From positions 110,298,001 through 110,362,000 of the forward strand of contig NC_082706.1 in NCBI RefSeq assembly GCF_030144855.1: a DNA stretch of 64,000 bases, given 5' to 3'. The notes below the pieces were generated by a model that did no database searches, had not been told where the DNA came from, and saw nothing but the letters and a program-made list of their open reading frames with translations. The translations under genes and the position numbers were made by a program. Numbering within the stretch: the first letter of the stretch is position 1; every line of letters starts with the position of its first letter. Positions 8,085-56,789 of this stretch are shown in pieces. Origin of the DNA: Hypanus sabinus. Taxonomy: Eukaryota.

Positions 8085-9635
8085 CATAGAAACATAAAAA
8101 AATAGAAAACCGACTGTACAATACAGGCCCTTCGGCCCACAAGGCTGTGGCGAACATGTCCTTACCTTAGAAATTACCTACGTTTACCCATAGCCTTCTA
8201 TTTTTCTAAGCTCCACCACCAGTAGCCTATTCCATGCACTCACTACTCTCTGCATAAAAAAAACTTACCCCTGACATCTCCTCTGTATTTACTTCCAAGC
8301 ACCTTAAAACTATGTCCTCTCATGCTAGCCATTTCAGCCCTGGGAAAAAGCCTCTGACTATCCACACAATCAAGGCCTCTCATTATCTTATACACCTCTA
8401 TCAGGTCACCTCTCATCTTCCGTCACTCCAAGGAGAAAAGGTCAAGTTCACTCAACCTATTCAGGCACATCCTTGTAAATCTCCTCTGCACCCTTTCTCT
8501 GGTTTCCATGTCCTTCCTGTAGTGAGGTGACCAGAAGTGAGCACAGTACTCCAAGTTGGACAGTACTCCAAGTGGGGTCTGACCAGGTTCATATAAAGCT
8601 GCAGCATTAACTCTCAGCTCTTAAACTCAGTCCTACAATTGTTGAAGGGCAATGCACTATATGCCTTCTTATCTACAGAGTCAACCTGCATAGCTGCTTT
8701 GAGTGTCCTATCAAGATCTCTCTGATCCTCCACACTGCCAAGAGTCGTGGTATTAATGCTATATTCTGCCATGACAATTGACCTACCAAAATGAACCACC
8801 TCACACTTACCTGGGTTGAACTCCATCTGCCGCTTCTCAGTCCAGTTTTGTATCCTATTAATGTCCTCCGACAGCAAATTTACACACTATCCACAACACC
8901 CCCAACCTTTGTGTCATCAGCAAATTTACTAACCCATCCCTCCATTTCCTCATCCAGGTCATTTATAAAAATCACATAGAGTAGGGATCCCAGAACAGAT
9001 CCCTGAGGCACACCACTGGTCATCGACCTCCATGCAGAATATGACCCGTCTACAACCACTCTTTGCCTTCTGTGGGCAAGCCAGTTCTGGATCCACAAAG
9101 CAATGTCCCCTTGGATCCCATGCCTCCTTACTTTCTCAATAAGCTTTGCTTGGAGTACCTTATCAAATGCCTTGCTCAAATCCACATACACTACATCTAC
9201 AGCTCTACCTTCATCAATGTGTTTAGTCACATCCTCAAAATATTCAATTGGGCTCATACAGCATGACTTGCCTTTGACAAAGCCATGTTGACTATTCCTA
9301 ATCATATTATGCCTCTCCAAATATTCATAAACCCTGTCTCTCAGGATCTTGTCCAGCAACTTAACAACCACTGAAGTAAAACTCACTGGTCGATAATTTC
9401 CTGGGCTATCTCTGCTCCCTTTCTTGAATAAGTAAACAACATCTGCAACCCTCCAATCCTCCGTAACCTCTACCATCCTCATTGACAATGCAAAGATCAT
9501 CACCAGAGTGTCAGCAGTCTCCTCCCTCACCTCCTACAGTAGCCTGGGATACATCTCGTCCAGTCCCGGTGACTTATCCAATTTGTTGCTTTCCAAAAGC
9601 TCCAGCACATCATCTTCGTTAAATCTACATGCTCA
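8085..9635 (-). mobile_element. CR1 LINE, 5'-truncated
   Basis: ORF 8880-9530 carries [30 protein letters not shown] and KFADD; 3' tail repeat near 8085-8110. Confidence 0.92.
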
Positions 9636-16850: not shown

Positions 16851-17374
16851 CTGTCGGCCCTCCTTATCCGCGGGTTCTGCATGAGCGGATTCAGCCAACC
16901 TCAGATCGGGAAAACCCGGAAGTTGAGCATTGTTTGCCTCACATCTCGTTCGTTCGCTAATTGTGTTGTGAGCGAGAGGAAGGAGTTTAAGGCTAGTAAG
17001 GAATGGCTGGCTAGCTACGTAAAGTGCTACAGCCTCAAGAACTTAAAGATTACAGGAGAATCGGGATTGGCTGATGCCAAGGCAGCATCAGCATTCCCNN
17101 NNNNNNNNNNNNNNNNNNNNNNNNNNNNNNNNNNNNNNNNNNNNNNNNNNNNNNNNNNNNNNNNNNNNNNNNNNNNNNNNNNNNNNNNNNNNNNNNNNNN
17201 NNNNNNNNNNNNNNNNNNNNNNNNNNNNNNNNNNNNNNNNNNNNNNNNNNNNNNNNNNNNNNNNNNNNNNNNNNNNNNNNNNNNNNNNNNNNNNNNNNNN
17301 NNNNNNNNNNNNNNNNNNNNNNNNCGGGGGGGGGGACCCAGAACCAATCCCCCACCAATGAGGAGGGCCAACTG
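16851..17374 (+). mobile_element. Tigger/pogo-like DNA transposon derivative spanning the assembly gap
   Basis: TIRs CTGTCGGCCCTCC.../...GGAGGGCCAACTG|TA. Transposase fragment FKASKEWLASYVKCYSLKNLKITGESGLADAKAA (CENP-B-type HTH end). Confidence 0.8.
17099..17324. other. Assembly gap (226 N)
   Basis: Run of N. Confidence 1.
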
Positions 17375-17599: not shown

Positions 17600-17878
17600 T
17601 GCCCATTATGCTGCTGAATCTAGAGCAGCAATGAAGCTCCTCCATCTCTTTCTGTGCATGTTTCCATAACAATGTTTTTGGGTTGTTAGTCCTAAGCTGA
17701 ACCCTCAAACCTGGAGAACTAGTGGACCTGTCTAAGTCTGGCTTCTACCCTTTGACAGGCTTGGCATGGGTGACCTGACCAAGAGCCAAAGCACAAGGTC
17801 TTGTCTCTAGCCAACATAACTCTCTATGTCTTTGAGACACACAAGCCTCCAAACCCCATGATAAGGTTGTGGTCCAAG
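17600..17878 (-). mobile_element. RTE-clade (Rex3/Expander-like) 5' UTR fragment or derived SINE
   Basis: The - strand reads CCTTATCATGGGGTTTGGAGGCTTGTGTGTCTCAA...GTCACCCATGCCAA, resembling recalled RTE 5' ends. Confidence 0.45.
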
Positions 17879-17914
17879 GGTTGCTATAAATTCCTCATTT
17901 GATCTACCAGTTTT

Positions 17915-19605
17915 ATCTATATGAAGAATAAAAGGGTGACTAGGGAGAGAGCATGCTCTGTTGGAGATCAGCAAGGTTGCCTAAGTCTTGAGCGCAAGGG
18001 ATGTGTGGGACTTTTAATAAATTTTCTCCTCAGTGTTTACCGAAGAGAACATTGTGATTGTTCAGGGATAAGTGAAACAAATGGTGCACACGCATATTTC
18101 CAGGGAGGAGGTACTTGCACTAAGGTGGATAAATCCGCAGGGCATTCCCGAGTGCTTCATTGGATTTTGTGAGAGGCTAGAGTGGAACTTGTAGAGGCCC
18201 CTGTAGAGATATTTGATTCATTGCTAGCCACAGGTGAAGTTCCCAAAGACCGGAATATGGCTAATGTTATTCCATTGTTTAAGAACTAAAGCAAGGAGGA
18301 GTCAGGGAACTACAGGTTAGTCAGCCTGAAATTGCTGGAGAGAATTCTCAGTGACAGGATCTACCAGCACTTGGGCAGAGTCTGATTAGGAATAGTCAGC
18401 ATGGCTTTGTGTGGAAAGTCACACTTGACAAACTTGTAGAGATTGCTGAAGATGTTACAGAAAATGTAAATGAGAAAAGGGCCATGAGTGTGTCCATGAA
18501 GCAAGACTCCTCATTGTAGGCTGGTCTGGAAGGTTAGGTCCCATAAAATCCAGGGAGAACTAGTTAGACAGATTCAAAATTGGCATTGAATTGGAGAAGG
18601 GAAGCAGATGTGTTGGTTGAAGGTTGTTTCTTTGAAAGGAGGTTGATGGTGTACCACAAGGGTCAGTTTTGGGACCTTTGTATTATATATACATATATAT
18701 ATAAATGATTTGGATGCGAATGCCCAATGCTTCATGCGAATGCTTCATTGGAAAGTTTGCAGATGACATGAAATTAAGAGGTCTTGTTGATAGTGAAGAA
18801 GGTTATTGTAGATTATAGGGGTATCTGAAGAGGCAGGTGGATTTCAATACAAATAAATGTGAGATGATGCATTTTAGAAAATCAAACCAGCATAGGACTT
18901 ATACCTTGAATGGTAGCTTATTAGGGATTTTAATGGAACGGAGAGACTTAGGACTGCAGGTGCATAATACATTGAAAGCAAAATCATAGGTAGACAGGGT
19001 TGTGAAAAAGGCATTTAGTACTCTGGCCTTCATTGGTTAGAGTGTTGTGTATCGGAGTTGGGTCATCATGTTGCAATTGTATAAGTCATTGGTGAGGCTG
19101 CCCTTGGGTTCGTACAGTTTGGTCATCCACTTATTGGAAAATCTTGGTTAAACTGGAAAGAGTGTGGTAAAGATTTACAAAGATTTTGCTAGGACTAGAG
19201 AGTCTGCATTATAGGTAAAAGCTGACCAGTTTATTTCTTGGAATGTAGGAGAATGAGGGACAACTTTACAGAGGTATTTAAAATTATGAGGTGGACAGTA
19301 ATAATCTTTTCCCCAGGGTAGCAACTAGATGGCATAGCTTTAGGGTGAGAGAGGAAAGACTTAAAAGGGACAGGAGGGGCAACATTTTTGCACAGAAGGT
19401 GGTGAATATATGGAACAGGCTGCCTAAAGAAGTGGTTAAGGCAGGTACAATAATATCATTTATGAAACACCTGGATGGGAACATTGAGAGACAAGCCTTC
19501 ATGTTATATGAGCTGAATGCAGGAAATTGGGAATAGTTAGATGGGCACTATGGTTAGCATGAACTCATTGGGCTCGATGGCCTGTATCCATGACTCTAGA
19601 CTCTA
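17915..19605 (+). mobile_element. Decayed CR1 LINE ORF2 and 3' end
   Basis: [17 protein letters not shown] and KFADD remnants; FAQKVVNIWNRLP; (GACTCTA) tail. Confidence 0.85.
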
Positions 19606-22242: not shown

Positions 22243-23610
22243 CAGACAGACAGACAGACACATATACTTTATTGATCCTGATGGAAATTGGGTTTCATTA
22301 CAGTTACACCAACCAAGAATAGAGTAGAAATATAGCAAAATAAAACCAGAAATAATTAAATAATAGTAAGTAAATTATGCCAAGTGGAAATTAGTCCAGG
22401 ACCAGCCTATTGGCTCAGGGTGTCTGACACTCCGAGGGAGGAGTTGTAAAGTTTGATGGCCACAGGTAGGAATGACTTCCTATGACGCTTAGTGTTGCAT
22501 CTCGGTGGAATGAGTCTCTGGGCTGAATGTACTCCTGTGCCTGACCAGTACATTATGGAGAGGATAGGAGACATTGTCCAAGATGGCATGCAACTTGGAC
22601 AGCATCCTCTTTTCAGACACCACCGTCAAAGAGTCCAGTTCCACCCCCACAACATCACTGGCCTTATGAATGAGTTTGTTGATTCTGTTGGTGTCTGCTA
22701 CCCTTAGCCTGCTGCCCCAGCACGCAATAGTAAACATGATAGCACTGGCCACCACAGACTCGTAGAACATCCTCAGCATCATCCGGCAGATGTTAAAGGA
22801 CCTCAGGAAATAGAGACGGCTCTGACCCTTCTTGTAGACAGCCTCAGTGTTCTTTGACCAGTCCAGTTTATTGTCAATTCGTATCACCAGGTACTTATAA
22901 TCCTCCACCGTGTCCACACTGACCCCTTGGATGGAAACAGGAGTCACCGGTGCCTTAGCCCTCCTCAGGTCCACCACCAGCTCCTTAGTCTTTTTCCACA
23001 TTAAGCTGCAGATGAGTCTGCTCGCACCATGTGACAAAGTTTCCCACCGTAGCCCTGTACTCAGCCTCATCTCCCTTGCTGATGCGTCCAACTATGTCAG
23101 AGTCATCAGAAAACTTCTGAAGATGGCAAGACTCTGTGCAGTAGTTGATGCACCATCAATAACTCACACTGAGACGTAAGGCGAGATATCGGCTTTTATT
23201 GACTGGAAGAAGGAACCAGGAGTGAGTGTCCATCATACTATGTCCTGGAGACTGAGGCCGAGCATCAGGCCTCAGATCGCCTTTATACAGGGGCCTGTCC
23301 AGACAGGCACATAGTTCACCACAGTAGTTGAAGTCTGAGGTGTAGATGGTGAGGAGAAAGGGAGACAGGACAGTCCCCTGTGGAACCCTAGTGCTGCTGA
23401 CCACTCTGTCTGACACACAGTGTTGCAAGCACACGTACTGTGGTCTGCCAGTCAGGTAATCAATAATCCATGACACCAGGGAAGCATCCACCTGCATCAC
23501 TGTCAACTTCTCACCCAGCAGAGCAGGGTGGCTGGTGTTGAACGCACTGGAAAAGTAAAAAACATGACCTTCACAGTGCTAATCGGCTTGTCCAGGTGGG
23601 CGTAGACAGA
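22243..23610 (-). mobile_element. Rex1/Babar-clade LINE, interrupted by a solo LTR
   Basis: PQGTVLSPFL, KTKELVVDLRR, YKYL and QSRLYFLR motifs; 3' (CTGT)n tail. Confidence 0.88.
23146..23323 (-). mobile_element. 178-bp solo LTR
   Basis: TG...CA termini, 5-bp TSD GTAGT (23141-23145 / 23324-23328), TATAAA and AATAAA on the - strand. Confidence 0.85.
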
Positions 23611-24039: not shown

Positions 24040-26890
24040 CAATTTAGAGAAGTGCACAGACGCAGTAATTCACAATGCCGCTGGGAAGATTTTAAAAGCC
24101 CGGAGTTTCTTTCAGCAGGAGATTCGACTGGGAGAAGTGTGCAGTCGCAGTAGCTAGTCATCTTGCAAGACTGGTGAGAAGAATTAAAAAGCGCTGAGTT
24201 TCCTTCAGCAAGAGATTCAATTGGGAGAAGTGGGTAGATGCAGTAGCTCATCATCATGAAAGGCCGCTGAGAAGGTTCTGGGATAAAAGGAAGACACTGC
24301 TTAGCAGAGCGTTCAGTAGCGTAGCATGAGTCAGAGTAGTAGGCCTTTAGCTCATTGGCGCTTCGGCAAAGGCGGGCCTAGGTGAGGGAAGAAGGTAAGT
24401 TACTTTCATATCTCTCTTTTCCTCTAACTTAAGAATAGTAGCTATGACTGCAAGATCAGTTTTCTGCTCTGGGTGTCAGATGTAGGCTATCCGGGAGATT
24501 TCCAGCCTCCCTGATGGCAACATTTGCACCAAGTGCATCGAGATGCAGCTCCTTAGAGAATGAGTTAGGGAACTGGAGCTGCAGATCAATGACCTTCAGC
24601 TTGTTAGGGAAAGTGAGGCAGTGATCGATGGGAACTACTGGCAGGTCACACCAGGGCTACAGGACACAGGTAAGTAGGTGACTGTAGGAGAGGGAAGGGA
24701 GAGCATCTGTTAGTGGGCAGCACCCCTGTGGCTGTTCCCCTAAACATTAAGTACTCCATTTTGAGTACTGATGGTGCTGGGGAGATGACCTACCTGAGGC
24801 GAACAACAGTGACCATGCTTCTGTCACTGGAGCTGCCCTTGTGGCTCAGAAGGGTAGGGAACGGAAGAGGATGGAAGCAGTAATAGGGGACTTATTTAAT
24901 TGCTAGAGGCAGGAAACATGTTCCCAATGTTGGGGGAGTCCAGAACCAGAGGCCACAATTTAAGAATAAGGGGTAGGCCATTTAGAACGGAGTTCAAGAA
25001 AAACTTTTTCACCCAGAGAGTTGTGGATCTATGGAATGCTCTGCCTCAGAAGGCAGTGGAGACCAATTCTCTGGATGCTTTCAAGGAAGAGTTAGATAGA
25101 GCTCTTAAAGATAGTGGAGTCAAGGGATATGGGGAGAAGACAGGAACAGGGTACTGATTGTGGATGATCAGCCATGATCACATTGAATGGCAGTTCTGGC
25201 TCTAAGGGCCGAATGGCCTACTCCTGCACCTATTGTCTATTGTCTATTAATAAGGGTAGGAGGAAATATGATGCTATTAGGCAGAAACTTGGGAGCATAA
25301 ATTGGGAGCAGAAGTTCTCAGGGAAATGCATGGTGGAAATGTGGCAAATGTTCAGGGAACATTTACATGGCATTCTGCATAGGTATGTTCCACTGAGCTA
25401 GGGAAAAGATGGTAGGGTAAAAGAACCATGGTGTACAAAGGATTTAGTTAAGAAGAAAAGCTTACAAAAGGTTCAAGAAACTAGGTACCGACAGAGTTCT
25501 AGAAAATTACAAGATTGCCAGGAAGGAGTTTAAGAATGAAATTAGGAGAGCTAAAAGGGGCCATGAGAAGGCTTTGGCAAGCAGGATTAAGGAAAATCCC
25601 AAGGCATTCTATAAGTATGTGAAGATGAGCTGTGTGAGAATTGGATCAGGTGCGATGGTGGAAACATATGCAGGGAGTTGGATCCTGATTGAAATCTTTC
25701 AGGATGTAGCAAAACACATTGAAGGTAGAGCAGTGGATGTAGTATATATGGATTTCAGTAAGACATTTAATAAGGTTCCCCATGCAAGGCTCCTTCAGAA
25801 AGTAAGGAGGCATGGGATCCAAGGAGACCTTGCTTTGTGGATCCAGAATTTGCTTGTCCACAGAAGGTGGTTGTAGATGGTTCATTTTCTGCATGGAGGT
25901 CAGTGACCAGTGGTGTTCTGCAGGGATCTGTTCTGGGACCCCTCCTCTTTATTTTTTTTATAAATGACCTAGATGAAGAAGTAGAAGGGTGGGTCAGTAA
26001 GTTTGCTGATGACACAAAGATTGAAGGTGATGTGGATATTCTGGAGGGTTGTGAGAGGTTACAGTGGGACATCGATAGGATACAGAACTGGGCTGAGAAA
26101 TGGCAGATGGAGTTCAACCAAGATAAGTATGAAGTGGTTCATTTTGGTAGGTCAAATTTGAAGACAGAGTATAATATTAATAGTAAGATTCTTGGCAGTG
26201 TGGAGGATCAGAGAGATCTTGCACTCCATGTGCATTGAACACTTGAATCTGCTGCTCAGGTTGACAGTGTTATTAAGAAGGCATATGGTGTGTTGGCAGT
26301 CATCAACCATGGGATTGAGTTCAAGAGCTGTGAGGTAATGTCACAGCTAGATAAGACCTTGGTCAGATCCCACTTGGTATTCAGTTCTGGTCACCAAAGG
26401 ATGTGGATACTATAGAGAGAGTACAGAGGAGATTTACAAGGCTGTTGCCTGGATTGGAGGGTGTACCTTATGAGAATAGGTTGAGTGAATTTGGCCTTTT
26501 CTCCTTGGAGCGATGGAGAATGAAAAGTGACCTGATAGAGGTGTATAAGACAATGACAAGCATTGATTGTGTAAATAACCAGGTGCATTTTCCCAGGGCT
26601 GAAATAGCAAACGCAAGGGGGCATATTCTTGAGGTGCTTGGAAGTAGGTACAGACAGGATGTTGGGTTTTTCACACAGAGAGTGGTGGGTGTGTGGTTTG
26701 CACAGACAGCAACTGTGGTGGAGACAGATACAATAGGTTCTTTTTAGAGACTCTTAGATAGGTACGTGGAGCTTAGAAAATTAGAGGGCTCTGCATTAGG
26801 GGAATTCTAGGCAATTTCTAAAGTAGGTTACATGGTCGGCACATTGCAGCTGAAGGGCCTGTAACGTGCTATAGATTTCTATGTTCTATG
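24040..26890 (+). mobile_element. CR1 LINE retaining 5' UTR and ORF1 start, with large internal deletions
   Basis: ORF1 from about 24445 reads MTARSVFCSGCQM*...CTKCIEMQLLRE*VRELELQINDL (zinc finger + leucine zipper). ORF2 RT fragments 25574-26747; (TTCTATG) tail. Confidence 0.85.
24900..25247 (+). mobile_element. Young CR1 3' fragment nested in older CR1
   Basis: Near-identical to 3723-4069; (ATTGTCT)n tail. Confidence 0.88.
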
Positions 26891-28432: not shown

Positions 28433-28438
28433 TTTATT
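28433..28438 (-). terminator. Putative polyadenylation signal of the cathelicidin-like gene
   Basis: AATAAA on the - strand, 127 nt after the TAA stop. Confidence 0.55.
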
Positions 28439-28564: not shown

Positions 28565-28654
28565 TTAGCTTTTTTCTGTAGTATCAACTGTTCCAGGAGA
28601 AGATCCAAATGTGGAACTGGAAGTTTGTACTTGCCTTGCCAATACTGGCATATC
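28565..28654 (-). CDS. Cathelicidin/NGP-like protein, terminal coding exon 4
   Basis: Strong acceptor TTTTTTTTCTGTTTTATGTTGCAG|, phase 0, DMPVLARQVQTSSSTFGSSPGTVDTTEKS*. AATAAA lies about 130 nt downstream. It completes the canonical 4-exon cathelicidin layout, but is linked by position and splice signals rather than homology. Confidence 0.72.
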   Translation of the reverse strand, partial: DMPVLARQVQTSSSTFGSSPGTVDTTEKS

Positions 28655-29249
28655 CTGCAACATAAAACAGAAAAAAAAGCACTTATACCTCCTTAAAGCA
28701 AAGGAATTACAATGTTCAAATAACCATTCTACTGACTAGGATGTTGAAAACATCTAAACCCGGCACTGTGTGTTACATTAAATGATTTTAGCATCCATCC
28801 AGCACTAACTGCACTGCTTACTGTAAGGACATTGAAAGAAGACAATATTTTAGTCTCTAACTCCAGTTAAATCTTTTAATCACCATTTTATTTTTTTCCA
28901 TGGGAACTTACTACAGTAATTTGATTTATTTTCCTTCCAGATGCTCCCTGTGCTTCAAATTGTTCCCAGTATTCTTGCATGTGCAGTGCCTTATATCTCC
29001 TTCTATCAGGATCGGCCTTCTTTTCTTTTTCCTCTGTTTTCACTCAGCTCCCTTTACTTAATCTTTAGCGAGAAACAGTATGTTGTTTTATCCACTGGTT
29101 GTATCGTTCACTTTTCCTTGATCTCCATGTCATTACAGATACTCCCCACTCTTTCTCTCCTCCCCACTCTTTCTCTGCAACCTGAATTCTGTTTTTCCTT
29201 GTTCTAATGAAAGGTCTTCAACCTGAATTGTTAACTGAATTGTTAATTA

Positions 29250-29992
29250 TTAATCGCCAACAGGCTCTGGGACAGCTTCTTCCACCAGGCCATCAGACTG
29301 CTTAAATTGTGCTGACACAACTGTATTTTTATGTTATATTGACTGTCCTGTTGTACATACTATTTGTTATAAATTACTATAAATTGTACATTGCACATTT
29401 AGACAGAGATGTAACATAAAGATTTTTACTCCTCGTGTATATGAAGGACATAAGTAATAAAGTCAATTCAATTCCATTCAATTTTCTCTTGGCAGATGTT
29501 GATTCGCCTGATGGCTATTTCCAATATTTTCTGTTAATATTCCAGTTAAGATAAGAGGCATTACATAAAAGATAAGGCGCACTGTGGGTGATCAGATATT
29601 AGCAATCATAGAAAATTAGGCTGCAGAGGGTCGTAGTCTCGGACAGCTATACGATAGGCACAGCTCTCCCCACTGTCATTAAGAGGTGGTGCCTCAAGAA
29701 GACAAAATCGATTACTAAGGACCCCCACCATCCTGGACATGCTCTCTTCCCATTAGTATCATCAAGGAGGAGGAACGTGAGCCTGACTGACACTCAGCAA
29801 TTCAAAAACAGCCCCTTTGCAATCAGATATCTGAGTGCTCCAGAAACCCATGAACACTACCTTTTTACTCCTTTTTTGTACATTGTTTAATTTTGTAACT
29901 TATAATCATTTTAACGTTTTTTTTTCACTATACCCCTGCTGCAAAACAACAAATTTCACACCGCGTGAGTTATGATATCTGATTCTAGTTCT
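29250..29992 (+). mobile_element. Two Rex1/Babar-like 3' fragments
   Basis: SFFHQAIRLLK-type tail with (ATTCA)n, and an HHPGHALF tail. Confidence 0.55.
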
Positions 29993-30364
29993 GGCCAGGT
30001 AGACAATGAGAAATGACACATTTTGGGAGAGAGTGGGACCCAAATCATTTTAGAGATTGCAGTAGAGGTCTTGATTGAGGAGGCAGAAATAAGAAAGAAT
30101 CTTGTTTCCACAGGGAATGGTGGGGGGGGGGGGTGGAAGAGGGGTCGAGGCAGTATTTTCTCCAGAACATGAAAGCCCCTAAAAGCAAATACCCATGGTA
30201 ATAAATGCTAGCAAGCAATCCTGAGTGCTAAAAGTAGCTCCATGCCCTCAAGTGAGGACACACCCACATTGTTGCATATGCAGTCATTGCAATAGCTAAC
30301 TTTACTCTAAAATCAAAAACTGAGCTCATGAAAGGTCACAGACATGATGTCTGTTTCTCTCGCT

Positions 30365-30925
30365 GCTAAATAGTAAAGTGCAAGATCACAATGAGGTAGA
30401 TTGTGAGGCCAAGTGTCCAGCTTATCAAATAAGAGGTCCATCCGAGAGTCTGATAAGGGTGGGACAGAAGCTGCTTTTCAGCCTGGTGGTACATACTTCC
30501 AGGGTTTTGAAGCTATTGCCCGATGGAAAAGGGGAGATGGACGAATGTCCCGAGTGGGTGGCACTCTTAAATATGCTTGCTGTTTCACTGAGGCAGCGAG
30601 AAAAGAGTCCATAGATGGGAAGCTGGTTCCCGAGATGTACTGAGATACGTTCACAACTCTGCCGTTTCTTGCAGATCACATGTAGAGCAATTACCACAGC
30701 AAGCCACTATGCATCCAGTCAGAATGCTTTCTATAGCACAGCAATAGTAGGGTCAACAGGGAAATGCCAAATTAGTTTAGTATCCTGAGCAAATCCAGGT
30801 GTTGGTGACCAGGCTAGGCTGTTGCTGATGTTCGCATCAAGGAGTTTGAATCTCTTCACCCTCTCAAACTCAACACTATTGATGTAAACAGGAGCATGCG
30901 CACCAACTCCTTTTTGAAGTTAATG
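30365..30925 (-). mobile_element. Decayed Rex1/Babar-like LINE fragment
   Basis: RLKSSFCPTLIRL tail motif. Confidence 0.6.
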
Positions 30926-30943
30926 ACTAGTTCTTTTGGTTAG

Positions 30944-33040
30944 GTGACATTTATTAACCTGTTGTTGGTGGTGCACAAGAAGAATGTGGTAACCTGCCTC
31001 AAAGACTATTGTCCAGTAGCGCTTATATCCACTGTGATGAAATTCATTGAGAGGTTGGTCTTGAAATTTATCAACTCCTGCCTGTGCATCGATTTTGATC
31101 CGCTCCGTTGCCTACCATCACAACAAGCCAACAGCAGATACCATTTCATTGGCTCTTCACTCAACCCTAAAACGTCTGGACATTGAAGATGCATACATTT
31201 GACTTGCAGAGCTGCAGTCAATGTCATCATTTCCTCAAAACTAATCAATGAGCTCCAAGATCTCGGCCTCAATACCTCCTTCTGTAACTGGTCCTCAATT
31301 TCCTCACTTGTAGACCCCAGTCAGTTTGGATTAGCAACAATATATCCTCCACAATCACCATCAGCACAGGTACACCTCAAGGCTATGTGCTTGACACCTC
31401 TGCTCTATTCACTTTACACTTACAATTGTGAGGATAAGCACAACTCCAATGCCATATTCAAGTTTTCTGATAACACCATTGTTGTTGGCCAAATCAAAGG
31501 TGGTGATGAATCAGCATCCACAAGGGCAATTGGAAATCTGGCTGAGTTGTGTCTCTAAAAAACATCAGCAAAACCAAACAGCTGATTATTGACATCAGAC
31601 TGAGAAAACCAAAAGCCCATGAGCCAGTCCTCATTGGAGGATCAGAGGAGGAAAGGATCAGTAATTTCAAATTATCATTTCAGAGGATCTGCCCTGGGCC
31701 CAGCACATAAATGCCATTACAAAGAAGGCACAGCAGCACCTCTACTTTCTTACAAGTTTGCAAAGAGTCAACATGCCATCTACAACTTTGACAAACCTTT
31801 ACAGATGCACGTTGGAAAGTATACCAACTGGTTGCATCATGCCCTGGTATGGAAGCACCAATGCCTTTGACAGACAGACAGACATACCTTATTGATCCTG
31901 AGGGAAATTGGGTTTCGTTACAGTCGCACCAACCAAGAATAGTGCAGAAATCTAGCAATATAAAACCATAAATAACTAAATAATAATAAGTAAATAATGC
32001 CAAGTGGAAATTAGTCCAGGACCAACCTATTGGCTCAGGGTGTCTGACACTCCGAGGGAGGAGTGGTAAAGTTTGATGGCCACAGGTAGGAATGACTTCC
32101 TATGACGCTCAGTGTTGCATCTCGGTGGAATGAGTCTCTGGCTGAATGTACTCCTGTGCCTAACCAGTACATAATGGAGTGGATGGGAGACATTGTCCAA
32201 GATGGTATGCAACTTGGACAGCATCCTCTTTTCAGACACCACCATCAGAGAGTCCAGTTCCACCCCAACAACATCACTGGCCTTAGGAATGATTTTGTTG
32301 ATTCTGTTGGTGTCTGCTACCCTCAGCCTGCTGCCCCAGCACACAACAGCAAACATGATAGCACTGGCCACCACAGACTCGTAGAACATCCTCATCATCG
32401 TCCGGCAGATGTTAAAGGACCTCAGTCTCCTCAGGAAATAGAGACGGCTCTGACCCTTCTTGTAGACAGCCTCAGTGTTCTTTGACCAGTCCAGTTTATT
32501 GTCAATAACAGTAAATAGTAAAGCTTACAAAAAGTAGTAGATACAGCCTAATCCATCAACGGTAAAGCTCTCCCCACCACGGAGCTCATCTACTGTCACA
32601 GGAAAGCAGCACCCATCACCAAGGATTTCCACTATCCAGGTCATGCTCTATTCTTGCTGCTGCCATCAGGAAGGAGGCACAGGAGACTTAGGTCCCACAC
32701 CACCAGCTCCAGGAACAGTTATTACGCCTCAACCATTGAGCTCCTGAAACAGAGTGGATAACTTCACTCACTCCAACACTAATTTCACAACCTATGGACT
32801 CAATTTTAAGAACTCTACAACTCATGTTCTCAACATTTATTGTTTATTTAATTATTATTGTTCTGTATATTTTTGTATTGACACAATTTGTTGCCTTTTG
32901 CACGTTGGTTGTCTCGTGTGCAGTTTTGCATTGTTTCTATTGTGTTTCTTTGTATTTACTGTGACTGCCTGCAAGAAAGTGAATCTTAGGGTAGTGTATG
33001 GTGACATTTATGTAGTTCGATAACAAATCTACTTTGAACA
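30944..33040 (+). mobile_element. Decayed Rex1/Babar-like LINE with nested younger copy
   Basis: CLKDYCPVALISTVMKFIERLV and PLLYSLYT...KFSD; 3' tail as in 1-592. Confidence 0.8.
31870..32506 (-). mobile_element. Young Rex1-like 3' fragment (nested)
   Basis: Near-identical to 22243-22877; (CTGT)n tail. Confidence 0.9.
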
Positions 33041-34144
33041 CTGAGAGAATAGTTATTGTCACAAAACTCATTATCTCCCTGTACTCCAAATCATTGTTAT
33101 TTAAATATGGCCCTTTACGGTTGTATCATCTGCAAACTTGTTAGTAGAGTTGGAGCAGTATCTGGTCATGAAGGCTTGAGTGTACAGGGAGCAGATTAGG
33201 AGGCTCAGGATGGTACCTTGTGGGGCACCAATGTTTCAAATAATCATGGTGGAGGTGTTGCTATCTGTTCTTACTGATTGCAGTCTGGTGGTCAGAAAGT
33301 CAAGTTGAGATACTCTGTATTTCTTTCTGCTGACGCTGCCTGACTTTTTTAAGTGTTGGCATTCATGCAGATTTATGGCAAATGGGAATCCAAACCAAAA
33401 CTGTAGTTGCTGGAAACACTCAGCAGGTGAGGCAACATCAGTGAAAGAGAGGTTAGTGTTTAAAGTCAAAGGCCCTTCATCAGAACTGAGAAAGAGAGAA
33501 AATAACTCATGGGATTTTAACCTGAAATATTAACTCTGTTTCTCCTTCCATCGATGTTGCCTGACTGCTGTGTATTGCCAGCATCTTAAATTTCTTTTTC
33601 AGCTTTCTCAATACCTAGTTTTAATTTTTCTTCTGTTTATTATCGAAAATAATGATATTAACCAAGGTATCAAGGAATCCTTCTTATCAGTATTATTATG
33701 TTATCTTTTAACTTCAGCTGAGAGGACAGAGCTGCAGTTGGTTGTACATGAAAGGTGGCATCTTCCACAGTTTAGGGTCCCTTGGTGATACATTAGACTA
33801 TTTATGTTTGTGTTCAGGACCTTGAGTTGATCATAAACCCATACTCCTACTATTCAACGCTGAGTGTGCTACCAATGATAATGGGTCCTTAAAAGAGTTG
33901 ATGGGCTTGGTCCTTGAATATCTGACAAATGGCATGTTACACTTTTCTTTCTTGAATTACAAAATGCATCTCAAAGCCAGTTAAAACTCCATTGTTAAAC
34001 CGAATTATTTTCCTCTGAATTGCAACAATGCCCTTACTTCAAAATTACTTCATTGTTGGTGGAATACGTAATGATTTCCTGAAGGTGCGAAAAGTTCCAT
34101 AAAAATGTTAATTGTCTTTCTCTTCATTGGTGTATTTGTCTTAC

Positions 34145-34231
34145 CTGAAAAACTTTGCAACGGACAGGCTGGAATCTAAGGGACGTGGAGGGAGGTCTTT
34201 GAAAAGCCTTTACAGTACATGACTTCATAAT
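34145..34231 (-). CDS. Cathelicidin/NGP-like protein, coding exon 3
   Basis: Acceptor TTTTCTCCTCACCAG|, 87 nt, IMKSCTVKAFQRPPSTSLRFQPVRCKVFQ (second Cys pair; cf. cathelicidin LVKxC...C). Donor CAG|GTAAGA. Phase 0 is the only open frame. Confidence 0.88.
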
Positions 34232-35071
34232 CTGGTGAGGAGAAAATTATATTATTTTAACAGATTTCCCTAAGTGGCTGAAATTATTGTTACAGTGCAA
34301 ACTAAGATTTAGTAAGGAGTAGGCAATGGCTATGTGCATTACAAAACAGCCCAGCATACCAAATACTTGCTCTTATTCTACATTCTTAGCTGTATTAATA
34401 TGTTTCAGCTCCCCTCCATCAAGATTGGAGATAAAATTGTCCGAGATTCCTCTCCAAATATTATTCAGTTAACTAAGTCACAGATTTGACATTTCTAATC
34501 AAATTTTGGTGACCATGCAATTATCTTTTTTTCAGTTTCCAAACTGTGGAAGTTTATTGTCTATCTCTACTGTCATGAGAAGATGAAGCGTGTGACATTT
34601 TCAACTCCTAAGCTCTTTGGTCAAGTACTACTACTTTGCTGTGATGGAAGAGCTTACAAGAACTTGGGTGCAACATGGTTGAAGGATGATAAATTATGAT
34701 ATATATACAAATCAGAATAGTGTGTATGTTGGAGAGGAACTTCAGGCTGAAGGTGAACATGCTGATTTTACTTTTCTAGATGTTATGTGACAGGACTGGA
34801 ATGTGTTGTCAAAGAGCTATGGTGAGTTGCTTCACTGCCTCCTGAGGTTGCATACACTACGGAACAGGAACAGGCACAGATGTAAAAGCTCAAGTAACTA
34901 GAAAATTGGAGACACACTTGCTGATTGTATGGAGGCAGACTCCCCTCTACATTTGACTTAACTGGGGCTAAGCTTCACAAGAAGTTTATTAAATTTAAAT
35001 ACCCATCACAATTTTATGATTGGAGGTAGATAAGCTAACAAAACTTGGAAGACTGTAGCAAATGCATTTAC

Positions 35072-35182
35072 CCCACCAGCCATGAAAGAACAATCAGCTG
35101 CATCATTGCTTGTCACATTATGATTACAGACGGTCTCCTGCATATGGAAGCTAACGTCATAGATGGTCCATTGAACTCCATT
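35072..35182 (-). CDS. Cathelicidin/NGP-like protein, coding exon 2
   Basis: Acceptor TTTGTTTCATTTCATCTGCAG|, 111 nt, NGVQWTIYDVSFHMQETVCNHNVTSNDAADCSFMAGG. It matches the cathelin SFxVKETxC...DCxF motif. Donor GGG|GTAAAT, phase 0. Confidence 0.9.
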
Positions 35183-35346
35183 CTGCAGATGAAATGAAAC
35201 AAACAAAGAATTACTCTGAGTAAGAATTAGTGCATGAGGATAGGTCCAGAAAAGACCATTATAAAACCTGGAAAGGTCAGGGTCGTACCACCATAAAGCT
35301 TTGAATATTGTCTGCATTAATCAATGCTTCATCTTGCATAATCTTT

Positions 35347-38300
35347 TTTTTAAATTCTCTTATTAAATTTTCAAATAGGTTACAGAAAGAAAAAAGAAAA
35401 TTATCGACCCTTCCCCCCCTCCCCTTAACCCCTCCCCCCTAACATATCCCTATAGAGAAAAAAAAGAAGAAAAAAGAAAGAAAGAAAGAATGCCTGGATT
35501 TCGGAAGATCCCCACACGCTCCATGGAGTTCATAATAGCTTTAATATGTATATTTATTTCTTTCCCCAGATAACCAATAATTTTATCTTTGGAGCACCTA
35601 TATATTTAATCCTATATTTTGTAAATAAGAGCACCAAATTTTCAGGAATATTTCATATTTATCTCTTAAATTATGTAATTTTTTCAAGTGGAATGCAGCT
35701 AAAAATTTCATTCTTCCAACGATCTATACTTAAGTATGAATCCGATTTCCAAGTAACTGCAATAGCCTTTTTGGCCACTGCCAATGCAATTTTTATGAAT
35801 TCTTTCTGATAATTATTCAATTTGGATTTTGATTTTATCCCTTCAATATTGCCTAGTAAAAATAATATTGGATTGTGTGGAAGTTGTATTCCAATAATTT
35901 GTTCCAATAAACCTCTTAAATTTGTCCAAAAAGGTTGAATTTTAGAACATGACCAAGTAGAGTGTAAAAAGTATCAATTTCTTGATTACATTGAAAACAT
36001 TGATCAGATAAATTTGAGTTTAGTCTATTTATTTTTTGTGGTGTAATATATATTTAATGTAAAAAGTTATATTGTACTAACCTTAGTCGAACATTTATTG
36101 TATTTGTCATACTGTCAAGACATAACCTTGACCAACTTGTTTCATCAATTTTAATATTCAAATCAGTTTACCATTTTTGTCTTGACTTATGAATTCCTTG
36201 TTTAATTGCTTGTTTTTGAATCAAATTATACATACCAGAAATATTTTTTAAATTTTTCCTTTATGAATTAAGGTTTCTATTTCATTAGGTTTCAGCAATA
36301 ACATTGTTTGACCCAGTTTATCTCTTAAATAAGCCCTTAATTGGAAATAACAGAAAAGAGTGTTATTTGATATTTTATATTTATTCTTTAATTGGTCAAC
36401 TGACATTAATATACCTCCTTCAAAACGGTCTCCTATATAACTAATCCCTTTGTGAAACCAGTTATATAAAAGTTGATTATCCATTGTAAAAGGGATGTTT
36501 ATTTTGAATTAAAGGTCTCTTTGCTAATAAAGGTTTCTTTATCTCATCATCAACATTTATCTTATTCCATAAATCAATCAAATATTTTAGCATAGGAGAT
36601 TCTTTCTTTTCCCGTATCCATTTAGATTCCCATTTATATATAAACTTCTGGTATATTTTCTCCTATTTCGTCTAATTCTATTCTAATCCATGCCGGGTTT
36701 ATCTTCATCAAAAAAAGATACAATAAATCGAAGTTGATTTGCTTTGTAATAATTCTTAAAATTTGGTAATTGTAACCCTCCTAGGTCAAATTTCCATGTC
36801 AATTTTCCCAACGATATTCCTGACATCTTACCTTTCTAAAGGAATTTCCTCATACATTTATTTAAATCTCGAAAAAATTTCTGTGGTAATTGTATTGGTA
36901 ATGTTTGGAATAAATATTGTAATCTAGGGAATATATTCATTTTTACAGCATTGACTCTACCTATTAGTGTTATTGGTAACATCATCCATTTATCAAGATC
37001 CTCTTGAATTTTTTTCAATAATGGCAAATAATTTATTTTATATAAATTCTTTATGTCATTATCAACTCTTATACCTAAATACTTTATACCGTTTATCAGC
37101 CATCTAATTTGAGTTATTAATCGACATTGACTATAATCGTAAGGGATAGAATTTCACTTTTATCCCAATTTATTTTGTACCCTGATATTTTCCCATATTC
37201 TTCCAATCTGGAAGATAATTTACGCAACGATTGTAATGGGTTAGTTAGATAAATCAGAACACCATCAGCAAATAAGTTAATCTTATATTCCTCCTGATTA
37301 ACTCTGAAACCCATAATATCTGAGTCAGTTCTAATTAATTCAGCTAATGGTTCTATCACCAACACAAGTAAAGCAGGTGATAATGGACAACCTTGTCTAG
37401 TTGACCTTGTTAACTGAAATGATGTTGAAATTTGGCCATTTGTCGCCACTTTAGCTTTGGGGTTAGTATTTAAGGTTTTAATCCATTTTATAAAAGATAC
37501 TCCTAATCCATATTTTTCCAATACCTTAAATAAAAAATCCCATTCCAATCTATCAAGTGCTTTTACTGTATCCAAAGCAACTGCTGCACTCATTTCTTCC
37601 CTCTTCTGTGCCAAATGAATTATGCTAAGTAACCGAGTTACATTATCTGCCGATTGTCTATTTTTAATAAATCCTGTTTGGTCCATGTGTATTAATTTTG
37701 GTAAGTATTTAGATAATCTGTTAGATAAAATCTTTGCTATTATTTTATAATCCATGTTCAACAAAGAAATAGGTCTATATGATGTTGGTTTTAAAAGATA
37801 GGAATAGGTCTATATGATGTTGGTCTTTTTTTGTCAATACTATTAAAATAGCTGTCAAAAAAGATTCTGGAAGTTTATGCATTCTTTCCGCTTGGTGTAT
37901 TAGCTCCATAAAAGGAGGAATTAATAAATCTTTAAACTTTTTGTAAAATTCAGGTGGAAAACCATCTTCTCCTGGAGATTTATTACTCTGAAGTGATCCT
38001 AGAGCTTCTTTGACCTCTTTTAATGTAAAAGGCACATCTAATCCCTTCTGTTCTTCCAAATTCAATTTTGGGAGAGTTATTTGTGATAAAAACCTTTCTA
38101 TCTCAACAATATCATTTCGTGATTCTGATTGATACAATTCAGAATAAAAATTTTTAAAGGTTTCATTAATTTCTAAAGGTTTATAACTAATTTTATTTAC
38201 ACTTGTTCTAATTGCATTTATCGTTTTGGAAGCCTGGTCTGTTTTTATCTGCAAGCAAGAATCTTGTGTGATCTTTCACCTAGTTCATAATATCTCTGTT

Positions 38301-40509
38301 CAGTTCTCATAATTGCTTTTTTCTGTTCGGTATGTCTGAAGTGTATTATGTTGTAGTTTCTTTGTTTTTCTTCTCTCATATATCTTTGAGATTCTTTTTC
38401 TAATTTTGTAATCTCTTTTTCCAATTGATCTATTTCTACCATATATTCCTTCTTAATTTTAGAAGTATAACTTATTATCTTGCATCTCAAATATGCCTTC
38501 ATCGCTTCCCATAATATAAATTTAACATCAACTGAATGTGAGTTTGTATCTAAAAAAAACTGAATGTTTTTTCATAAAATCACAAAAATCTTGACATTTT
38601 AATAATATTGAATTAAATCTCCATCTGTAAATCAATTCCTCCTTATCCATCATTATCATTGTCATTATCAAGGGGGAATGATCTGACAATATTCTTGCTT
38701 TATGTTCCATATTTTTCACTCTGACCTAAATATTCGCTGATAGTAAAAAAAAATCTATTCTTGAATAAGTTTTATGTCTATTTGAATAAAATGAATAATC
38801 TCTCTTGGGTTAATTCTCCATATATCAATCAAATTTAAATCTTTCATCAATGATAAAGTTAATTTTGCTACTTTTGGTTTTGTGACAACCTTTGTTGACC
38901 TATCTAAAACTGGGTCTAGACAAAAGTTAAAGTCTCCACCTATTAATATTTTATTGTGTGCGTCAGCCAAATTCAAAAAAGCCTCCTGTATAAATTTTAC
39001 ATCTTTTCATTTGGTGCATAAATATTCATAGGAGTCCATAGTTCTGAAAAGATTTGACAATGTATAATTACATATCTTCCTGCAGAATCAATTAATACAT
39101 TTTGTATTTTAATTGGTAAAGTTTTGTTGACCAAAATTGGAACTCCCCTTGCTTTTGAATTAAATGAAGCTGCTCTAACATTTCCGACCCAATCTCTCTT
39201 TAATTTCTGATGTTCTATCTCTGTTAAATGTGTTTCTTGTATAAAAGCTATATCTATTTTCATTTTCTTAATGCATGTTAAAATTCTTTTTCTTTTCACC
39301 AGTCCATTAAGCCTATTAACATTAAAACTTTAAAAATTCAGTAAATTAGTCATTATTTTTAACGGGGTTACTCTAGTCTATAATAATACGTAATATTTCA
39401 ACTCTCATAGTACCTTGGAGAATTATTGTAAAATTCTCCATGTTGCTATGTGTCTCCCCTCCGATCATCCAGGCAAAGAAAGAAGGATAGATTATAAAGA
39501 AAAAAAAAACAAAAAAAAACCCTGCTAATGTTGTGAATGAAAAAAAACACAACATTACCCCTCTCTGTTGTGCAGTTCATGGCAATTGCCATGATTACAC
39601 ACGTGAATCCCGTAGCGATCGATCCGAAGTTTCCCCAGCTGCCCCGTAACATGAAAAAAGTATATATAAAATAAGAAAAAATAATATCACTACTCTCATT
39701 TAATATTTCTCAAATTTTTACCTTTCTCCCCCTGTATTATACAATTAAAAGTATATTTAAATATTCTTGTCTTTAATTTCCATCAGCTCACTTCAGTGTC
39801 CCCGTCTTTATCTTTAATCTGTTTCACTTTTAAATCTTTACTGTGACTAGTGAATATTTGGGAGTTCTTGTGCAAACTGCTCTGCATCCCAATGATCAGT
39901 AAAAAATCTTCTTTTTCTGTCATCCAAAAAAATTGTCAGTGTTGTCGGGTGGCGCAATATAAATTTATAACCCTTTTCCCATAAAACATTTTTCGCTGAG
40001 TTAAATTCCTTCTTTCTCTTCAAAAGGTCATAACTTATATCAGGATAGAAAAGAACTGCTTTCCCTTCTATCATCAATGGCTCATTTCTCTTTCTGGCAT
40101 ACTGGGCAGCCGCCTTCAGGATCTTTTCTTTATCTTGATATCTTAAGCATTTTATCAAGATTGGTCGTGGTTTTGGATCAGGTTGGGGTTTTAACCTTAA
40201 GGCTCTGTGGACCCTTTTGATTTCAATCAACTGGGTTCCTTCTTCCATTTCCAAATTTACCGGGATCCATTTTTGAAAAAATTTTATTGGATCCTCGCCC
40301 TCTGTCCCTTCTTTAAGACCAACAATTTTAATGTTATTTCATCTATTAAAAATTTCAAGCACGTCTATTTTTTCCAACAGTCGTTTTCTTTCTGATGTCC
40401 AGGCAAGAACATTATCTTCCATTTTATTCACTCTCTCAATAGTGTCTCCCGTTATTTCTTCCAGGTTTTTAACTTTCTTGTCCATTTTCTCCTGTTTTTT
40501 CACCATTTT
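35347..40509 (-). mobile_element. L1-clade LINE, about 5.2 kb, 5'-truncated in ORF1, frameshifted
   Basis: ORF1 (RVHRALR...PRPILI...FYPDIS), APE endonuclease (IAFIQETH, NIYAPN, GGDFN, SDHSP), RT (TRQGCPLSP, LFADG), A-tail. 16-bp TSD ATCTTGCATAATCTTT at 35331-35346 / 40510-40525. Confidence 0.95.
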
Positions 40510-41644
40510 ATCTTGCATAATCTTTGTCCTATATTCTTATTGGTAGTTTGAGAAAATGCTGGGGAATGTCCTGAATCTATTCTGAGTATCTCCCCTGTTG
40601 TCTTTATTTGTTGGGTCTAGTTTTCTCGTCCATAAAATTAAATAGGGTGAAAATTCACACAATGAGGTAAATGGACAGCTAATTTAATAGTCAATAGTCC
40701 TACTATTGCCCAAAGGTAAAATCAACCCTGATATCTTCCTAGATAACACTTCCATGATGCCGATACCTATATTTGACACAGGTCCTCCTGAAAGACTAAC
40801 TCGAGTACATGGCACATGAGCTGTAAAAGGCAAGCATATCCATGCAGTTGCAAAGTACTGCTTCTATCAGAAAAAACTGCTAAAAGTTTTAGTACATGGT
40901 ACCAATTGCTTCAGCAGTACACACATCAATTTGCTTCCAAATTTATACATCAATGGAAAATATATACTTTTGTGCTACTCCTGACATCTGGCAAATTAGT
41001 TAGAACAGTGGGGCCTAAGTCACAGGCTCATACTAGAATGAGGCATGAGAGGCAGATTGTGATGTCCCGATTCACACAAAATTGTTTTGAGAGAAGCATC
41101 GTTAAATTTGAAATTGGACCATGAAATTCTTGGTAACACTATGTTAATTGCACTCTGGCAAATTTGAAGTTTAGCAGCGTGAAAATAACAGTGCTTAATA
41201 ATACCAGATTAATTTAAATGGATCTTGGCTGATTTGTACTTAATCAGAGGCAGGTTTAACTGTATACATATCTTCAATTCTTATTAGTAGTATCAAACGG
41301 AGTTTCAGAGTGGATGGAGGAGATACAAAATACCAGAATCTGAAATTAGCTGAAAATTGAACAATGGTTCCAGCTTCGTTGCCTTCTTGTTGCTCAGTAT
41401 TGCTGGCTGGCCAGAAGAATGGCATAAGGGGAAAGTGCAAACTACCCGGGCATTGAATATGGGATGACGGTCTCTGGCTTACACTTATCCAGAGTGGCTT
41501 CCTACACTTATTTGATCAAGAATTTCCAACTTCAGTGTAGATGAAGTAAAATTTATGAGATTGAATTTTGCTTTGTTTTCCATTAGCCAACCATATTTGC
41601 TAGGTTATTACTCTTTTGCAATGCAGTGTAAGTATTTCATTGCA

Positions 41645-42603
41645 TGGCAGAATTAAACAAGACTGGGAAAAAGAGCTTCAATATACTATATCAACAGAAA
41701 AATGGGAAAAAATTCTACAAATGGTTAATTCTTCTTCTATATGTGCTAAACATACTTTAATACAATTTAAGGTCGTACATAGAGCTCATATGTCTAAAGA
41801 TAAGCTTGCTCAATTTTACTCCCATATTAACCCTCAATGTGACAGATGTCACTCAGAAGTTGCTTCATTGACCCACATGTTTTGGTCATGTCCCACCTTA
41901 TATAACTATTGGAAGGACATATTTGCTATCATTTCCTCAGTTTGGAATATTGATTTACAACCCCATTTTATTACTGCAATTTTTGGTATACCAAATGAGG
42001 ATAGTAGTCGACTTTCCCCTTCAATTAGACGAATGATTGCTTTTACAACTCTAATGGCTAGGAGGTCTATATTACAAAATTGGAAAGAAGTAAACCCTCC
42101 TACCACGTTTCAGTGGTTCTCTCAAACTATTTCTTGTTTGAGCTTAGAAAAAATTAGAAGTACTATTTTTGATCCATCAATTAAGTTTGAAGAAACTTGG
42201 GGACCGTTTATTCGACATTTTCATGTGAGTTAATTTGACCTCTTCCGGACCTTTTCTCTTTTTATCCTTGTTCTGGTATGGAGTTCCGGAGTTCTTGACA
42301 CTATCATGTACATATAAACTTTTATTATTGCCCATGTTAGTCTAGGTTTATTTTTTTTTCAATATATATTTTTTTATTGTATTTTTTATATATTTTTTTT
42401 CTTTTCTTTCTTTTAGTGATTATCCTTTTTCATGTATAATCAATATAGGTTTGACTGATTATTATATGATGTTTTTTTACTAACATTTTAATAAGATATT
42501 GATATCTTATCACTATTTCAATTTCAAGCCTAATGTATTTACAATCTATTTAATATTATGTTATGTTATTTTTTATATATGAAAATCAATAAAAAGATTG
42601 AAA
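41645..42603 (+). mobile_element. L1-clade LINE 3' fragment (different lineage)
   Basis: CDRC...HMFWSC zinc knuckle, AATAAA and A-tail. 15-bp TSD AAG(T/A)ATTTCATTGCA at 41630-41644 / 42604-42618. Confidence 0.92.
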
Positions 42604-42862
42604 AAGAATTTCATTGCAATCTTTTCATAATGCCACTGGGAGACTTCTTGGCCCTTTTGGGCAGAGAAATTCTAACACCAGTCACAAAACAGCCCTCATT
42701 AAGGAGATGCTTCTGTGCTGGTTAGGTCAACACTGTTTTAACGGGAACAGGCTGCCGATAGAATTGGGCCCCACACATTACTTTGATTGCTTTGATTCAT
42801 TGGCAGAGAATATAAGACTTGCCCAGCCATTAAATACCTATTTATTGAGACCCACACATTAC

Positions 42863-43039
42863 CTTAAGTCTAGCAGAAGTAACCTGAAGCAGCTTAAATA
42901 GGTTGACTGGTGACCAGCGCTTGTTGTACCGTGCAACAGCTGCAGAAGCCACCTGTCTACCAGTGAAAGTGGAAGAAGGAACACTGGCAGTCAAAGTAAG
43001 GAATCCAACAAGCAAAATAATCTTCTGCAACATCTTCAT
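42863..43039 (-). CDS. Cathelicidin/NGP-like secreted protein, coding exon 1 (signal peptide + cathelin/cystatin helix)
   Basis: ATG at 43039 gives MKMLQKIILLVGFLTLTASVPSSTFTGRQVASAAVARYNKRWSPVNLFKLLQVTSARLK (59 aa). It has a hydrophobic signal peptide, then AVARYN...NLFKLL resembling cathelin AVxxxN...NLYRLL. Donor AAG|GTAATG, phase 0. Confidence 0.88.
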
Positions 43040-48365: not shown

Positions 48366-48419
48366 ATGTTTCAAGAACTGAATAATATTCTTAATACAAC
48401 TCCCGAAACGTGTGAGCAG
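48366..48419 (+). CDS. ELP6: Elongator complex protein 6, coding exon 1
   Basis: MFQELNNILNTTPETCEQ matches the recalled human ELP6 N-terminus MFVELNNLLNTTPDRAEQ. Donor CAG|GTAATG, phase 0. It lies in a CpG-rich promoter region. Confidence 0.95.
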
Positions 48420-56555: not shown

Positions 56556-56634
56556 GGAATAAGTGTACTCCTTTGTGACAAGCAGACTGATGGAGGTTTC
56601 CTTGTGCATCATTTCCTTTCTTTTTATCTCAAAG
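56556..56634 (+). CDS. ELP6: Elongator complex protein 6, coding exon 2 (gene continues beyond window)
   Basis: Acceptor TTTTCCTTTTATTTTCTGAAACAG|, GISVLLCDKQTDGGFLVHHFLSFYLK(G) versus human GKLTLLCDAKTDGSFLVHHFLSFYLK. Donor AAG|GTGAGT, phase 1. Exon 3 was not found before 64000. Confidence 0.96.
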
Positions 56635-56789
56635 GTGAGTGGTGTTTCCGACTTGGGTGCAACTTTGTATTTGGTGTGTGCAGAATGCCAGAAGTCCTAT
56701 GCTCCTGAACACATTAAGCTTTCTGAGGTTGTACAGGTTCTTTTAGTGGAATAAGTATCTCGCTGATTTCAAGAGCTCATGTCATTATT

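Follow-up and report, generated by a model that had tools for sequence, protein, structure and literature searches.

The question raised by a 64-kb stretch of the genome of the Atlantic stingray, Hypanus sabinus (contig NC_082706.1, positions 110,298,001 to 110,362,000; the whole stretch is called the window here, and positions are counted from its first letter) is whether a gene with the pro-domain and exon layout of a cathelicidin must also encode an antimicrobial peptide. Cathelicidins are one of the main families of host-defence peptides in vertebrates. Their genes have four exons, of which exons 1-3 encode the signal peptide and the cathelin domain, while exon 4 encodes the C-terminal part, a cationic mature peptide of 12-100 residues that varies strongly between genes (PMC3487008). 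The minus strand of the window carries an apparently single-copy gene of this layout, and its product is most likely a cathelin protein that has no antimicrobial peptide, like mouse NGP and rabbit p15.

Splicing of four minus-strand exons gives a protein of 154 residues, encoded by a reading frame of 465 nt that ends in TAA. Exon 1 (42863-43039; 177 nt, residues 1-59) contains the ATG, a putative signal peptide (MKMLQK and then a hydrophobic core of 12 residues) and, with YNKR..NLFKLL, the helix with which the cathelin-like domain opens. Exon 2 (35072-35182; 111 nt, residues 60-96) encodes beta strands in which the motifs ETVC and DCxF..G are found, including Cys78 and Cys90, while exon 3 (34145-34231; 87 nt, residues 97-125) provides Cys101 and Cys121 and the end of the domain. 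The coding part of exon 4 (28565-28654; 90 nt, 29 codons plus TAA) encodes a DMPVLAR motif and then a slightly acidic tail of 22 residues that is rich in Ser and Thr. The donors of the three introns are GTAATG, GTAAAT and GTAAGA, each acceptor is an AG behind a pyrimidine-rich tract, and the exon sizes place all three introns in phase 0. An AATAAA polyadenylation signal can be read on the same strand at 28433-28438, about 127 nt past the stop codon. The preliminary description of this locus had proposed the four exons, GT-AG borders, phase-0 introns and 154-residue reading frame from the letters alone, and re-splicing matches it exactly; the downstream AATAAA is present, ETVC and DCxF..G lie in exon 2 and the four cysteines that it noted are invariant in the orthologues described below.

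The protein is identical, letter for letter, to the RefSeq prediction XP_059801055.1 of H. sabinus, which bears the automated name "cathelicidin-related antimicrobial peptide Na_CRAMP-like". In the public assembly the gene is located at 110.32-110.35 Mb of CM057972.1 (GCA_030144855.1). A phmmer search with exon 1 among 1.84 billion representative proteins returned the identical 154-residue protein together with five relatives of similar length. The translation of exon 1 has 100% identity to residues 1-59 of the public protein and matches positions 1-59 of a hidden Markov model (HMM) of the family with an E-value of 8e-26. Exon 2 matches positions 56-103 of the same model (E 1e-13) and positions 46-73 of the Pfam Cathelicidins model, while exon 3 matches the family HMM with an E-value of 2e-5; the exon-by-exon searches of Pfam and the PDB gave matches that are below threshold, yet collinear. 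Together with spliced mapping in other species, the public protein and the family HMM show that the four-exon model is not a product of chance.

Orthologues occur in at least 10 other elasmobranchs, with one gene per species and isoforms in some of them. The 11 species recovered, the stingray included, are eight sharks and three batoids. The batoid orthologues, found by protein searches, are those of Pristis pectinata and Leucoraja erinacea, and the sharks are two species of Chiloscyllium, Cetorhinus maximus, Heterodontus francisci, Heptranchias perlo, Mustelus asterias and two species of Scyliorhinus. All their names are automated: cathelicidin-1-like, cathelicidin-2-like, secreted phosphoprotein 24-like or uncharacterized. 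The gene had been called hidden, which is true only with respect to a naive track of open reading frames, since RefSeq predicts the protein and its orthologues are annotated in many sharks and rays. Searches for homologues with the stingray protein and with two family profiles returned elasmobranch proteins alone up to E = 10, with no tetrapod, teleost or holocephalan protein among them. Cathelicidin is marked as present in Chondrichthyes in Table 2 of Kordis & Turk (2009), and beyond this presence/absence table, no paper that describes a cathelicidin of sharks or rays or studies its function was found in the open literature searched. The stingray gene is thus an uncharacterised member of a known family, already predicted by RefSeq and ordinary as a gene, and its sole previously unreported feature is a conserved, non-cationic tail.

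Exact spliced mapping in six species finds four exons and three phase-0 introns in all six. The exons measure 177-192, 108-111, 87-96 and 42-90 nt in order, while the introns are between 0.3 and 25 kb long. The family HMM likewise detects every one of the four exons, collinear and all on the same strand, both in the window and at five further elasmobranch loci. Conservation of this four-exon structure across sharks and batoids shows that purifying selection acts on the reading frame. The family HMM detects no second copy of the gene in the window, and with no tandem paralogue in the surrounding DNA examined, the stingray gene appears to be single-copy. In L. erinacea, a stretch of 483 bp that includes exon 3 has a second copy, 96% identical, some 7 kb upstream of exon 1 (positions 2839-3320 and 17646-18126 of the examined locus). 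Either a segmental duplication of recent date or an assembly artefact might explain it, since the locus is close to the end of a record of 1.9 Mb. Because all introns are in phase 0, exon 3 can be skipped in frame; the predicted X2 isoforms of Heterodontus and Pristis either skip it in this way or end early inside the domain, and two of the four cysteines are lost.

The domain encoded by exons 1-3 is placed among the cathelicidins by its sequence profile. The full stingray protein scores 42.5 bits with Pfam Cathelicidins (PF00666; curated cut-off 21), against 25.9 bits with Pfam Cystatin (cut-off 22.2) and 14.1 bits with Pfam Spp-24 (cut-off 26). Cathelicidins is also the top Pfam model in all six orthologues that were scanned, and a precomputed match to it exists for the remaining ones. 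When two family profiles, one built from 10 sequences and the other from 11, were run against all PDB sequences, the best solved relatives were 4eyc, 1n5h and 1kwi: the cathelin-like domain of human CAMP (4eyc) has an E-value of 3.8e-9 and the protegrin cathelin domains have E-values of about 1e-7, with cystatin C behind them at 4e-5 and fetuin-B at 0.015 (the latter with the 10-sequence profile only).

The same relationship is visible in the motifs. Three segments, N-x-R/Q-S-x-x-x-N-L-[FY]-[KR]-L-L, K-E-T-x-C and D-C-x-F-K-x-x-G-x-x-x-x-C, align with those of cathelin domains, and in cathelicidin precursors and the stingray protein YN..S..NL[FY]+LL, KETxC and DCxFKxxG correspond residue by residue. 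C78, C90, C101 and C121 are invariant in the 11 sequences, and the first three align with cysteines of 4eyc and of protegrin. The cathelicidin precursors of mammals, birds and reptiles, such as CAMP/LL-37, the protegrins and Na_CRAMP of Naja atra, resemble the stingray gene in having a signal peptide, a four-cysteine cathelin-like domain of about 100 residues, four exons and a PF00666 match. Unlike these precursors, the stingray and its relatives have a short, non-cationic exon 4 that bears a motif, a basic domain (pI 7.6-10) and, apparently, a single gene copy. The domain of the stingray protein is the most basic, with a charge of +8 and a pI of 10.0, while pI values in the other species are 7.6-9.3.

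The predicted fold agrees with this placement. In an AlphaFold2 model built from the 11-sequence alignment, the block-mean predicted local distance difference test (pLDDT) is about 80-94 over residues 21-120, except for a loop near residues 81-90, where it is about 72. One helix packs on a four-stranded sheet, as in the cystatin/cathelin fold. In a Foldseek comparison with the PDB, the first match is the human cathelin-like domain (4eyc_B), with cystatins E/M and C and fetuin-B close behind, while the best matches among Swiss-Prot models are bovine, ovine and porcine cathelicidins, SPP24, mouse NGP and rabbit p15. These sister families can be told apart by the sequence profiles, but not by the fold alone.

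What distinguishes the elasmobranch proteins is exon 4. In the stingray, the codons for P128-V-L-A-R132 (28634-28648, minus strand) encode the motif [V/I][L/I/M]AR, which is common to all elasmobranch orthologues in the alignments. In its full form, [P/A/T][V/I][L/I/M]AR, it is conserved about as well as the core of the domain: in the 11-sequence alignment, A131 and R132 are invariant and V129 reaches a conservation of 90% or more, as L130 does in the 10-sequence alignment. In the catsharks Scyliorhinus canicula and S. torazame, the tail motif occurs twice in tandem (PVIAR...PV[L/M]AR). The motif is followed by 3-24 residues across elasmobranchs, which are neutral or acidic, with only 3-5 in Pristis, Leucoraja, Chiloscyllium and Heptranchias. 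The N-x-S/T sequon is frequent in the aligned shark tails. In 12 elasmobranch sequences, the region past the fourth cysteine has a net charge of -2 to +2; the stingray tail has a charge of 0, with -1 for the 22 residues after the motif, and is predicted to be disordered (pLDDT < 50). No credible alternative cationic exon in phase 0 is present in intron 3 or in the 10 kb downstream of the gene, where repeat-derived junk is all that was found. On each of these counts, charge, conservation and the lack of an alternative exon, a cationic and variable exon-4 antimicrobial peptide is absent. The preliminary description had taken exon 4 to encode a variable peptide; what it encodes instead is a non-cationic segment with a motif conserved across elasmobranchs. 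For this reason, of the two halves of the label cathelicidin/NGP-like that had been given to the gene, the second fits better than the first.

Mouse NGP and rabbit p15, like the stingray protein, have a cathelin-like domain but lack a classical antimicrobial peptide at the C-terminus. Among the Swiss-Prot fold matches to the stingray model, NGP (O08692) ranks 9th with 25% identity and p15 (P26202) ranks 26th. Unlike NGP and p15, the elasmobranch proteins have the [V/I][L/I/M]AR motif, which is seen here only in elasmobranch sequences, and the likeness does not imply direct orthology. The product of the stingray gene would be a protein of about 15 kDa that is secreted and consists of a signal peptide, a basic, disulphide-bonded cathelin-like domain from exons 1-3 and a short, disordered tail from exon 4. 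By analogy with NGP and p15, the folded domain would then be the functional unit, acting in host defence or in the regulation of proteases, and the conserved motif may be a retained site of C-terminal processing or recognition. In 11 species, the sole member of the family has the pro-domain and the layout of a cathelicidin and no room for a cationic peptide. If this interpretation is correct, automated names of the type 'cathelicidin antimicrobial peptide-like' are misleading in elasmobranchs, and these fishes offer an old natural test case for what cathelin-like domains do by themselves.

The neighbouring gene may also speak for this family assignment. ELP6 lies on the plus strand, head-to-head with the cathelicidin-like gene and 5.3 kb from its start codon. 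Its exon 1 (MFQELNNILNTTPETCEQ, then GT) occupies 48366-48419, where a called gene of 268 residues with a PF09807 ELP6 domain begins, and after an intron of about 8 kb, exon 2 follows at 56562-56639 with approximate borders (Pfam ELP6, 41 bits; cut-off 31.6). The same head-to-head pair is present in the sawfish P. pectinata, and in the skate (Leucoraja) there is a weak candidate for the first ELP6 exon upstream of the gene. No ELP6 exon occurs within 10 kb upstream of the bamboo-shark gene, and the upstream neighbour in a catshark is not ELP6, but a gene for a protein kinase of 537 residues. Human ELP6 is taken here to lie between KLHL18 and CDC25A at 3p21.31. In mammals, cathelicidin cluster A adjoins CDC25A, while cluster B, which contains NGP and NGP-like genes, and the avian cluster adjoin KLHL18, all in one syntenic block (PMC12006171, PMC4571063). 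NGP itself thus belongs to the KLHL18-flanked part of the block. The adjacency of ELP6 would support orthology of the stingray locus with the tetrapod cathelicidin block, given the presumed position of human ELP6. Taken together, the cathelin domain, the four cysteines, the four exons and ELP6 support the placement of the elasmobranch gene in the cathelicidin family. The proposal that the cathelicidin/NGP lineage has an intact member here in a cartilaginous fish is supported in this respect; its novelty as a gene is not.

Several points weigh against an interpretation of this gene as a cathelin protein without a peptide. Its placement within the cystatin superfamily is based on the scores of profiles, on motifs, on the arrangement of the exons and on a single neighbouring gene. 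The only records of the orthologues are those on genome contigs. A far more divergent paralogue that does bear an antimicrobial peptide may possibly be located elsewhere in the genome. In addition, a language-model search for look-alikes put clusters named RARRES2 (chemerin) first.

This last result leads to the alternative that survives best, even though it is unlikely: a protease-activated signal of the chemerin or anaphylatoxin type, in which a carrier with the cystatin fold is cleaved in its tail so that ...VLAR becomes a receptor-binding C-terminus. Chemerin is a secreted protein of about 160 residues with the cystatin fold, and it functions through the trimming of a short C-terminal tail; it appears among both the fold matches (human chemerin, 8xgm_D) and the language-model matches, where it is the nearest. 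As in prochemerin, a short, variable stretch comes after a conserved motif near the C-terminus. Arg is the last residue of this motif, which catsharks have as a tandem pair, and C3a ends in LGLAR, a likeness of value as a lead only. At the level of the profile, however, there is no match to chemerin: the 11-sequence family profile finds no chemerin chain in the PDB at E <= 10, against 4e-9 for cathelin domains. Pfam has no model for chemerin. Chemerin has six cysteines, compared with four here, and on the human map, an ELP6 neighbourhood fits the cathelicidin block and not the RARRES2 locus. The scores of 0.93-0.94 in the language-model atlas are reached by chance in 4-10% of shuffled queries. 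Because of this chance rate and the missing profile match, trimming of the chemerin or C3a type is improbable. A broader version of the same idea, also a long shot, would be that the cathelicidins of elasmobranchs either never were precursors of antimicrobial peptides or have ceased to be, and would act instead as protease-activated mediators that are cut after [V/I][L/I/M]A-R to expose a receptor-binding C-terminus. If it were true, they would link cathelicidins functionally to chemerin, and it would suggest that cartilaginous fishes have no classical cathelicidin antimicrobial peptides altogether.

There is an equally slim chance that the gene encodes a classical cathelicidin precursor, from which a granule protease frees exon 4 as a membrane-active antimicrobial peptide. 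The four-exon layout and the cathelin pro-domain fit the textbook definition, and the automated RefSeq name says the same. Elastase and proteinase 3 cut mammalian cathelicidins after residue types such as Val and Ala, and both residues occur in the conserved motif. The segment behind the motif in the stingray protein, however, is rich in Ser and Thr, has a net charge of -1 and is predicted to be disordered, and the 3-5 residues after the motif in four other species are too few for any antimicrobial peptide. Exon 4 is also conserved, whereas hypervariability would be expected of such a precursor.

That the cathelin-like protein is instead an active inhibitor of cysteine proteases, similar to the type-2 cystatins, is likewise doubtful. 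Pfam Cystatin does exceed its cut-off, and the fold matches to cystatins E/M and C have template-modelling (TM) scores of about 0.55 by model length and 0.72-0.76 by target length. Of the inhibitory wedge of type-2 cystatins, which consists of an N-terminal Gly, QxVxG in the first hairpin and Pro-Trp in the second, only a Gln aligned with the Q of the QxVxG loop is kept, in most orthologues but not in the stingray, and the loop as a whole is not kept, being K-N-G-V-Q in the stingray and Q-[ND]-L-[SNR]-E in sharks. The second hairpin has no Pro-Trp, and in the PDB profile search, cathelin domains score much better than cystatins.

Least probable is membership of the elasmobranch SPP2 (secreted phosphoprotein 24) family with a role in mineralisation, for even though one Pristis isoform is automatically named 'secreted phosphoprotein 24-like', weak Spp-24 matches exist in Pfam and SPP24 models are among the fold matches, the Spp-24 scores of 14-24 bits are under the cut-off and under those of Cathelicidins in every orthologue, the stingray gene and its catshark orthologue LOC119972334 are both absent from a 2026 inventory of Spp2 genes in S. 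canicula and H. sabinus, and the published Spp2 sequences differ from it in their signal peptide and in an acidic tail rich in SxE (PMC13188829). The SPP2 family, which has been expanded or retained in cartilaginous fishes, does share a cystatin-like domain, four cysteines and KETxC with the stingray gene, while the locus differs, as do the signal peptide and the tails, which are serine-rich as well as acidic (PMC13188829). The catshark orthologue is not the off-cluster gene 'spp2.L3' of S. canicula; the latter is LOC119971934, which has a different sequence and is expressed in denticles and the dental lamina (Debiais-Thibaud et al. 2026, PMC13188829). The accession numbers of the two genes are close and they may be on the same chromosome, but they are different genes.

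The window has a G+C content of 39.7%. Repeats make up much of the introns of the cathelicidin-like gene and of the 28 kb downstream of it. A run of 226 Ns at 17099-17324 is an assembly gap or a masked stretch. Fragments of non-LTR (long terminal repeat) retrotransposons are located at 8880-9530 (minus strand), 25837-26238 (plus strand) and 22489-23091 (minus strand); they include reverse-transcriptase open reading frames (Pfam RVT_1, 85 and 41 bits) and an open reading frame with a motif of the ALKBH8_N type.

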